Source of the DNA: Phallusia mammillata
Lineage: Eukaryota
Direction of reading: 5' to 3'
DNA: 64,000 nucleotides
NCBI GenBank assembly: GCA_965637545.1
Contig: OZ281499.1
Location: 14,198,001-14,262,000 of the forward strand
Below are positions 6,878 through 7,953 of this stretch, piece after piece. Both the position numbers and the translations under genes were made by a program. The notes under the pieces are model-generated. The model was not told the origin of the DNA. It saw nothing but the letters and a program-made list of their open reading frames with translations, and did not search any database. Position 1 is the stretch's first letter; the number at the start of each line of letters is the position of its first letter.

Positions 6878-7173
6878 CAACGAGACAGAGTAGAAAACGA
6901 GCTAGACAGCAGCATCAGTCATTCTTGACCAGGCGCGGTTATCGTGGACCCCCGCCCTGGTCTTTGGATTATCCTTGGATTATCCTTGGATTATTTTTTG
7001 ACTATTTTTGGACTATTTTTGGACTATTTTGGACTGTTGTGATTGGACGTTACTGCAATCGGACAATATCTGTGATTGGCTGTTCACTGCTATCAGATAC
7101 AAAAGCACCACAAGTCTTAGAATTGTTGCGACAAGGGGGCCTATAATTAGTTGTGGGTTCTAACTTTGTAAAC

Positions 7174-7189
7174 AGTCCTTCTCAGGACT
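7174..7189 (+). other. Histone 3' stem-loop-like hairpin in the 5' UTR of E
   Basis: taaac-AGTCCT-TCTC-AGGACT-aaaATG: 6-bp stem and 4-nt loop, like the genuine GGCTCT-TTTC-AGAGCC loops in this window. Confidence 0.65.
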
Positions 7190-7192
7190 AAA

Positions 7193-7953
7193 ATGCCTAC
7201 TTATGCAGAATCGGCTGCGAATGGAGCCATCAACCAACCACCAGTTGAGAACGACCCGTTTGCAATCGACCGAAGTGGCGAGGTCCTGGCCTCCGACGCC
7301 AAGAAATCTACCAGGTCCTCCGAGACCTGAAGTTCGACTTTCGCCAGGATTTAGATGGGATTATACAGGCCCCAAAAGGTAAAGTTACTTTCTACTGCTC
7401 ATCATCTTTCACCGCCAAGACCCTGGCACAAAACCTCTCCGATTCAAAACAGGCCGTTTACGCGTCAGCGTTCTTGGATGACGAAGTTAAGGTGACGATG
7501 TCATATGTGCCACCAGCAATCAAAATGTAAGGGGGGGCCACTTCCCCTTACAACACCTCCAGCACCACCAACAACATCGACCCCAAAGGGCGCCCGGCGC
7601 GACCTCCTCGAAAGAGTTGAGGCTCCGGCGCCCCGCGGGGTACAGGAAACAAGGAAAACACCAACAAAAAACGTAATCGATCTGGGAATAAGACACCGCA
7701 AAAAACACCATGTTGTTCGACCCGATATACCGACGATGTGTCCATGGCCTGCTTGTGTGGGACATGGCACATCAAGTGCAGATGTGGGAAGTGGGCTCAA
7801 AGGGAGGAATATGATAAGATCAGTAGATGCGAGAACGAACAGTGCCAGCGGCTGCTGTTGGCATGTGGGTGTGGCAAGTGTCACCAACTCAAACGGAATG
7901 AACAGTTAGACTGTGCATTTAATTTACGCGATTTTAACCATACCATTAATTAG
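7193..7953 (+). pseudogene. ORF1 of E (frameshifted, internally deleted) with Cys-rich C-terminus
   Basis: MPTYAESAA.., DFRQDLDGIIQAPKGKVTFYCSS similar to F ORF1; C-terminal CLCGTWHIKCRCG..CENEQC..CGCGKC. Confidence 0.75.

Follow-up and report, generated by a model that had tools for sequence, protein, structure and literature searches.

The stem-loop at the 3′ end of histone mRNAs (Rfam RF00032) has a 6-bp stem and a 4-nt loop, with a G at stem position 2, C-G and U-A as its top pairs, uridines at loop positions 1 and 3, an A-rich 5′ flank and an A(C) 3′ flank; loop positions 2 and 4, like stem positions 3 and 4, vary among histone stem-loops. Its reader, SLBP, is abundant in S phase, in eggs and in early embryos, and is to our knowledge regarded as almost exclusively a histone-mRNA protein. 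Here we describe hairpins that share all of these features and the same freedom at loop positions 2 and 4, in the 5′ leaders of two retrotransposons, E and F, of the ascidian Phallusia mammillata. Both elements are of the L1/Tx1 type, which lacks long terminal repeats (non-LTR), and lie in a 64,000-nt window (GenBank assembly GCA_965637545.1, contig OZ281499.1, positions 14,198,001 to 14,262,000 of the forward strand; coordinates below count from its first letter) that is a broken histone cluster occupied by retrotransposons. Comparison across related elements strongly supports the motif as a selected, cis-acting, sense-strand RNA hairpin rather than a histone gene remnant. Our leading interpretation, which we hold tentatively, is that it mimics the histone stem-loop and that SLBP, or a protein like it, reads the mimic and would thereby gate translation of the first open reading frame (ORF1) or the fate of the RNA.

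The E and F hairpins (Table 1) agree at 21 of 22 nt, as the earlier note on this DNA had claimed, and direct reading places the sole mismatch at loop position 2. That note was also right that the surrounding 5′ untranslated regions (UTRs) do not align, apart from a short start derived from the H3 leader, and that the distance to the ORF1 ATG differs: it is 3 nt in E and 258 nt in F, where the ATG stands at 24006. We take the E ATG as the true ORF1 start because the two N-termini align (MPTYAES...DPFAIDR in E, MSYAAAT...EPFAFDR in F). The spacing in E is an outlier beside the 41-66 nt of relatives and the 258 nt of F; in this dead copy it may reflect deletion rather than design, and a protein bound at the E hairpin, if any, would cover the AUG. 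The E hairpin forms part of the minimum-free-energy fold. The degenerate pattern proposed in the earlier note finds 8 matches in the window with at most one mismatch, against 0.64 expected. When sites were required to combine a fully paired 6-bp stem (G at position 2, U at position 6), a 4-nt loop carrying U1 and U3, and an A-rich 5′ flank, only five remained in the 64 kb: the H4 (12027), H3 (22632) and H2A (23142, minus strand) stem-loops, E and F. The AAAC flank of the E hairpin is shared by the H3 and H2A stem-loops of the host. Compared with host H4 (GGCCCT TTTC AGGGCC), the E/F hairpin differs at two pairs, both fully compensated.

The same hairpin recurs in distant relatives. ORF2 homologues 35-40% identical were traced to their contigs, in assemblies that look ascidian as judged by the spliced leader. 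Every relative that has a readable leader and falls in one of three clades carries the hairpin upstream of ORF1; for L121, L124 and L125 the leader is not contained in the contig. In eight copies from six loci, a hairpin of this design stands 41-66 nt before the ORF1 ATG. The ORF2 tree contains three separate, well-supported clades with one stem type each: E and F (AGUCCU), L122 and L123 (AGCACU), and L126, L127, L129, L130 and L133 (AGUUCU). The two members of the first clade are sister elements, 64% identical at the amino-acid level across the reverse transcriptase region of ORF2. In a 13-sequence alignment, 98.7% of the stem cells are paired; stem position 3 covaries between UA and CG, and position 4 among UA, AU and CG. 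Invariant are A1-U, G2-C, C5-G, U6-A, loop U1 and U3, and the AA columns of the 5′ flank. All 14 hairpins conform to the 6-bp stem, 4-nt loop, U1/U3 and A-rich flank except the decayed second copy of L130, which has one broken pair. When RNAalifold was run on wider stretches without structural bias, this helix alone was predicted and the flanks were unalignable; outer helices that look plausible by eye around the hairpins of L126, L127, L129 and L130 gained no RNAalifold support and were rejected. The ORF1 proteins are very divergent among the three clades while the invariant bases of the hairpin stay fixed. The proposal of a conserved cis element thus holds up, the hairpin having been kept with compensatory changes in three distant clades, including loci without a histone gene. 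The two Clavelina loci examined (L131, L132) yielded no hairpin, perhaps owing to truncation or to too great a distance.

The two arms change in concert and L133 has a U-G wobble, features that point to sense RNA rather than a DNA palindrome. A role at the DNA level, as a palindromic transcription-factor site or internal-promoter element, is accordingly very unlikely in our estimate. It would suit an inverted repeat with a fixed 4-bp spacer, and CCAAT-like and TATA-like motifs do occur 30-130 bp upstream of the E hairpin. However, the half-sites change together at two variable positions, which a dimeric factor would not need, and the U-G pair of L133 is an A-C mismatch on the other strand, leaving no palindrome as DNA. 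Moreover, host promoters are apparently used, since pieces of the H3 leader or sequence of spliced-leader RNA genes stand at the 5′ ends of the elements.

Chance similarity, or a functionless remnant of a neighboring histone 3′ end, is the explanation we find least credible. Fragments do abound in this histone cluster, and the exact 20-mer AAACAGTCCTTCTCAGGACT occurs in >120 copies of an unrelated metagenome repeat, yet a 21/22 match between otherwise unalignable leaders has a probability of ~1e-6 by our own estimate, the hairpin recurs at the equivalent position in three clades, some of whose loci have no histone gene, and no same-strand histone coding sequence lies upstream of the E or F hairpin. 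The motif is internal to the element, as the earlier note had argued, sitting ~295 nt inside an ATG-free leader in E and, in relatives, inside elements associated with spliced-leader RNA genes. In the metagenome scan for the 20-mer (>120 matches, L001-L120; Ga0126336 and a few others), nearly all matches belong to one repeat resembling a miniature inverted-repeat transposable element, whose ~75-bp terminal inverted repeats contain the 20-mer and which otherwise has no similarity to the window; two odd matches, L035 and L066, are without a histone gene. We set this occurrence aside as unrelated and uninformative on function. Derivation of the motif from the target site or host flank (AAACAG from the H3 target AAGCAAACAGCTC, or placement of E behind an H4 promoter and F behind an H2B promoter) was rejected because relatives in spliced-leader genes also carry the hairpin and because both leaders reach well upstream of it; an H2B gene sought in the window for promoter comparison was not found.

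Five relatives (L123, L126, L128, L129 and L130) have on the same strand an exact copy of the ascidian spliced-leader exon, ATTCTATTTGAATAAG, with GTAAGT after it, and the exon lies 120-270 nt upstream of the hairpin. Its 16-mer is the Ciona spliced leader (PMC1488885). An exon with its donor at the head of the leader indicates that these relatives are lodged in spliced-leader RNA genes or have such a gene at their start, in some cases as head-to-tail arrays; a histone locus is therefore no requirement for the hairpin. Near the ORF2 stop codon, L129 (7282-7297, minus) and L130 (7387-7402, minus) also carry the exon in reverse complement, with a partial similar match in L126 (~8393-8404). Another reverse-complement copy is present in L128 (867-882, minus). 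Pairing with the leader or the target may be the role of these copies.

This context raises the question of whether the motif is a 3′ splice acceptor (YYUUUYAG then R), trans-spliced or cis-spliced from an upstream spliced-leader donor, by which the host-derived leader would be removed and ORF1 would gain a short capped 5′ UTR. Ascidians do trans-splice (PMC1488885), the relatives have a spliced-leader exon and GTAAGT donor at a suitable distance upstream, loop position 4 is C or U in 13/14 hairpins, which yields YAG, and the ~45-70 nt from AG to AUG would suit a trans-spliced 5′ UTR. The composition of the leaders argues otherwise. Counted from the host-derived start to the ORF1 ATG, ten leaders totaling 2607 nt contain 2 ATG, whereas shuffles contain 49 on average and never fewer than 32, and the other permutations of the letters A, T and G occur 34-90 times each in the same leaders. 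ATG is equally scarce on both sides of the hairpin (in E, absent from the 295 nt before it), which for the upstream part is expected only if it is retained in the translated RNA. The near-absence of ATG thus suggests that the leader is kept whole and scanned from its 5′ end, with the hairpin inside the retained 5′ UTR. An acceptor would also leave the covariation of the 3′ arm with the 5′ arm unexplained and would make tandem copies pointless. Finally, contigs that are probably RNA cross the F hairpin unbroken and with no added leader, which is weak evidence since contigs drop minor forms. Taken together, we consider a splice acceptor unlikely.

For the identity of the reader, we compared the hairpin with known RNA families. 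Among 4227 Rfam families, RF00032 scores highest on E as well as on F, and E matches no other family. In the opposite direction, a covariance model trained only on transposon hairpins (R1) scores E at 34.6 bits and F at 36.4 bits; the next matches after its own members, at 15.8-25.6 bits, are genuine histone stem-loops, those of H2A, H3 and H4 in the window and, in L121, those of H2A, H3 and H2B. The G at stem position 2 (G7), which is reported to be required for SLBP binding and to make the only base-specific contact, via Arg181 (PMC10388802), has its equivalent in all transposon hairpins. With this G, loop U1/U3, the 6+4 geometry and the A-rich flank all retained, binding by SLBP is plausible. 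Because the conservation pattern fits what SLBP needs, and because the elements appear to use leaders of host histone or spliced-leader genes and the timing of SLBP is suitable, SLBP appears to be the best single candidate.

Several observations weigh against this assignment. The RF00032 scores of E (14.7 bits) and F (16.7 bits) are less than half the gathering score of 34, and a 25-kb RF00032 search did not report either hairpin at E<=10. The stem foot departs from the GG...CC of histone stem-loops: the second pair, G-C, is kept in all, but the first pair is A-U in 14/14 transposon hairpins and G-C in 7/7 host stem-loops. The L122 and L123 stems have a purine at position 4 of the 5′ arm. The transposon hairpin stands in a 5′ leader before the ORF, not at an mRNA 3′ end, and no purine-rich, AAAGAG-like element of the kind used by the U7 small nuclear ribonucleoprotein follows the E or F hairpin, unlike in host H3, H2A and H4. 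The hairpin persists in relatives that occupy spliced-leader RNA genes, away from any histone gene. An R1 scan found none in L128, which has a leader, or in the sister families C, D and A (A2) of the window, so that the hairpin is either ancestral with several losses or was gained more than once. Lastly, only three independent lineages support the covariation; the 14 hairpins fall into these three, with one compensated stem type per lineage. A purine at 5′-arm position 4 falls outside the histone consensus, and transposon hairpins may, unlike histone stem-loops, occur in two or three tandem copies. By the tests run, the transposon hairpin is like the histone stem-loop but is not a member of the RF00032 family.

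That the first pair is invariably A-U in the elements and invariably G-C in the host hints at another reader, or a modified one. The likeliest such reader would be the element's own ORF1 protein, with its RRM-like and CCHC matches, or its ORF2 protein, and the hairpin would then serve cis-packaging, ribonucleoprotein nucleation or translational autoregulation, the likeness to the histone stem-loop being a matter of ancestry (an old capture) or convergence and not of present function. The weak RRM-like and CCHC matches in ORF1 imply that an RNA-binding partner is encoded, the 2-3 hairpin copies in L123, L129 and L130 resemble an arrangement often shown by packaging and operator sites, and persistence in spliced-leader-gene lineages fits as well. 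On the other hand, the invariant positions coincide exactly with those reported or regarded as important to SLBP and the variable ones with those that vary in histone stem-loops, which is not expected of an unrelated reader, and the invariant bases are unchanged in three clades whose ORF1 is very divergent. We regard a reader other than SLBP as somewhat doubtful, yet nearly as likely as SLBP itself.

The hairpin has a possible functional analogy in the iron-responsive element and its regulatory protein, as in other 5′-UTR operator hairpins: each is a short conserved hairpin in a scanned 5′ UTR where a bound protein could block or gate initiation. Sequence, structure and presumed protein differ, and the transposon hairpin lies 90-300 nt from the 5′ end (~295 nt into the leader in E, ~170 nt in F), near the AUG and not cap-proximal. 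Among transposons, the closest parallel is offered by target-specific non-LTR elements of the R2 kind, which likewise have a fixed site in a multicopy host gene and a host leader at the 5′ end; such elements, co-transcribed with the host gene as a chimeric transcript, need a device for expressing ORF1. R2 carries a ribozyme like that of hepatitis delta virus at its 5′ end. No ribozyme-like fold was found here, and the leader is seemingly kept and scanned rather than cut off. The rRNA, snRNA and tRNA genes that we know as targets of such elements differ from the histone H3/H4 and spliced-leader RNA genes seen here. In domain content, the elements resemble the L1/Tx1 type, with RRM-like and CCHC matches in ORF1, an APE endonuclease, reverse transcriptase and zf-RVT in ORF2, and A-run ends. 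A literature search of titles and abstracts found no histone-stem-loop-like leader hairpin for L1/Tx1 elements, nothing on SLBP with retrotransposons, and no account of non-LTR elements that target histone genes or the spliced-leader RNA genes of ascidians.

The assignment of E and F to the L1/Tx1 type follows from ORF2 domains, namely Pfam Exo_endo_phos (PF03372), RVT_1 (PF00078) and C-terminal zf-RVT (PF13966) in F and RVT_1 on pieces of E, together with a separate ORF1 that has a CCHC motif and a weak RRM-like match (the ZCCHC3 RNA-binding domain); a protein search found no homologues of the C-terminal part of ORF1. Element E is a decayed copy, with ORF1 and ORF2 interrupted by frameshifts and stops. 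Its leader starts with 17 nt (6878-6894) identical to the H3 5′ UTR at 12340-12356, and its 3′ A-run adjoins the H4 5′ UTR, 14 nt before the H4 ATG. At 7040-7150 the E leader has a pair of ATTGG (CCAAT-box) motifs together with TATAATTAG, which precedes the hairpin's CAGTCC by ~30 nt; this layout resembles the H3 promoter at 12220-12300 and may represent an internal or captured promoter. Element F is interrupted at its 3′ end, at 30093, by another insertion. It is probably transcribed: its family ORF2 is 99% identical to a catalogued Phallusia mammillata Pol-like protein, and contigs from two runs that are probably RNA (X4 and X7, a tool's guess) begin at 23567 and 23571 and continue through the hairpin. 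This comparison used contigs only, in which no transcript start, strand, trans-splice junction or depth-based boundary is readable. In three other runs (~98.7% identity) the F stem-loop is unchanged, the sole variant, 23731 C>G, lying in the flank. Within F ORF1, 24668-25114 contains 90-nt tandem repeats, and a contig from another strain omits 276 nt there, indicating that copy number varies. The 5′-truncated copy F′, 96-98% identical to F, has no leader and hence no hairpin.

Insertion positions recur in the host genes. F′ is joined to H3 by ACCAAGCAAACAGCTC on its 5′ side and by poly(A) followed by GCAAACAGCTCGC on its 3′ side, and elements of the E/F group have poly(A) or A-run 3′ ends and target-site duplications. 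The unrelated-looking family C ends in the next H3 copy with poly(A) then CCAAGCAAACAGCTCGC at 22200. The 3′ junctions of F′ and C are 3 nt apart in H3 codons 4-5 (17580-17613 and 22190-22225; on the C side, poly(A) then CCAAGCAAACAGC), and the relative L121, 38-40% identical and from another assembly, adjoins H3 at about the same place. In the three junctions observed, separate insertion events thus share a position within a multicopy host gene, which looks like an H3-specific insertion site; E itself adjoins H4, and family A terminates in H4 codon 6. Like the start of the E leader, the C and D leaders hold pieces of the H3 5′ UTR.

The cluster around these insertions is heavily disrupted. 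Family C begins with the H3 5′ UTR from the presumed transcription start, and 157 bp of H3 5′ coding sequence lie on both sides of it (17585-17741 and 22197-22353, 98.7% identical), as a very long target duplication or through recombination between two H3 copies. Decayed histone genes lie at 4253-4585 and 23185-23560 (minus): one is an H4 copy that family A truncates at codon 6, so that the 3′ UTR and stem-loop are gone, and the other is an H2A copy with an in-frame stop (GNYY*) whose own ATG adjoins the 5′ end of F. The 3′ ends of E (11559-11651) and C (22109-22200) contain modules resembling box C/D small nucleolar RNAs (ATGATGA ... CTGA with a terminal stem), placed between AATAAA and the final A-run; Rfam snoU25 scores only 20.9 bits on the E module. 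The remainder of the window (30094-64000) is transposon-rich, with PIF/Harbinger-type DDE_Tnp_4 transposase fragments at 41289-42041 and 45232-46047 (minus strand), a TNP-like RNase H piece at 51429-51821 and a second family A copy at 55035-58825.

Table 1. Features of the window, and hairpins and spliced-leader exons of related elements (positions in the window unless a contig is named)
Feature	Position	Strand	Remarks
Element E	6878-11651	+	decayed L1/Tx1-type non-LTR retrotransposon; Pfam RVT_1 on ORF2 pieces
Element E 5′ leader	6878-7192	+	5′ limit approximate; ATG-free
E hairpin, A-rich 5′ flank	7169-7173	+	TAAAC; read directly
E hairpin	7174-7189	+	stem AGTCCT (7174), loop TCTC (7180), stem AGGACT (7184), then AAA (7190); read directly
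Element E ORF1 start codon	7193-7195	+	ATG, 3 nt past stem; translation aligns with F ORF1 N-terminus
H4 3′ stem-loop (genuine)	12022-12067	+	GGCCCT TTTC AGGGCC; RF00032 34.6 bits
F′, 5′-truncated F copy	12374-17597	+	within H3 coding sequence; 96-98% identical to F
F′/C insertion-site stretches in H3	12358-12389, 17580-17613, 22190-22225; L121 4540-4600
H3 3′ stem-loop (genuine)	22627-22673	+	GGCTCT TTTC AGAGCC; RF00032 32.9 bits
H2A 3′ stem-loop (genuine)	23101-23147	-	RF00032 36.6 bits
Element F	23561-30093	+	leader 23561-24005, ORF1 from 24006, then ORF2
F hairpin and flanks	23727-23751	+	TAAAC (23727), AGTCCT (23732), TTTC (23738), AGGACT (23742), then ACCC; read directly
L122 hairpin			CACAAC AGCACT TTTT AGTGCT AC
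L123 hairpin			L122-type stem; three copies, 52 nt apart
L126 hairpin			AGTTCT TTT[GC] AGAACT; two element copies
L127 hairpin			AGTTCT type
L129 hairpin			AGTTCT type; two copies
L130 hairpin			AGTTCT type; two copies
L133 hairpin			AGTTCT TTTT AGAGCT; one U-G wobble
Spliced-leader exons	L123 111-132; L126 3425-3446, 8563-8584; L128 2511, 9229, 10838; L129 2331; L130 2454

A working model for the SLBP reading can be outlined. The elements would rely on the leaders of host histone or spliced-leader genes for their expression, and SLBP or an SLBP-like protein would bind the predicted site in the scanned leader near the AUG. The bound protein would then gate scanning into ORF1, or alter the export and stability of the RNA. 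Element expression would thereby be tied to the histone-mRNA program of S phase and the early embryo, when host promoters and target genes are active. The fuller proposition, that a clade of ascidian retrotransposons copied the histone stem-loop into its leader and uses host SLBP as a switch for translation or RNA fate, strikes us as conceivable but rather uncertain on the comparative evidence. Phallusia eggs are routinely used for mRNA injection.

Whatever its reader, the hairpin offers a rare example of a short RNA element maintained in lineages whose polymerases are only 35-40% identical, and it marks a group of elements with recurring insertion in H3/H4 and spliced-leader RNA genes. If SLBP does read it, these RNAs would be the first natural non-histone SLBP clients known to us, and the hairpin would represent a new molecular mimicry and a natural experiment on SLBP bound upstream of an AUG. 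Retrotransposition in these ascidian elements would then be coupled to S phase or early cleavage.

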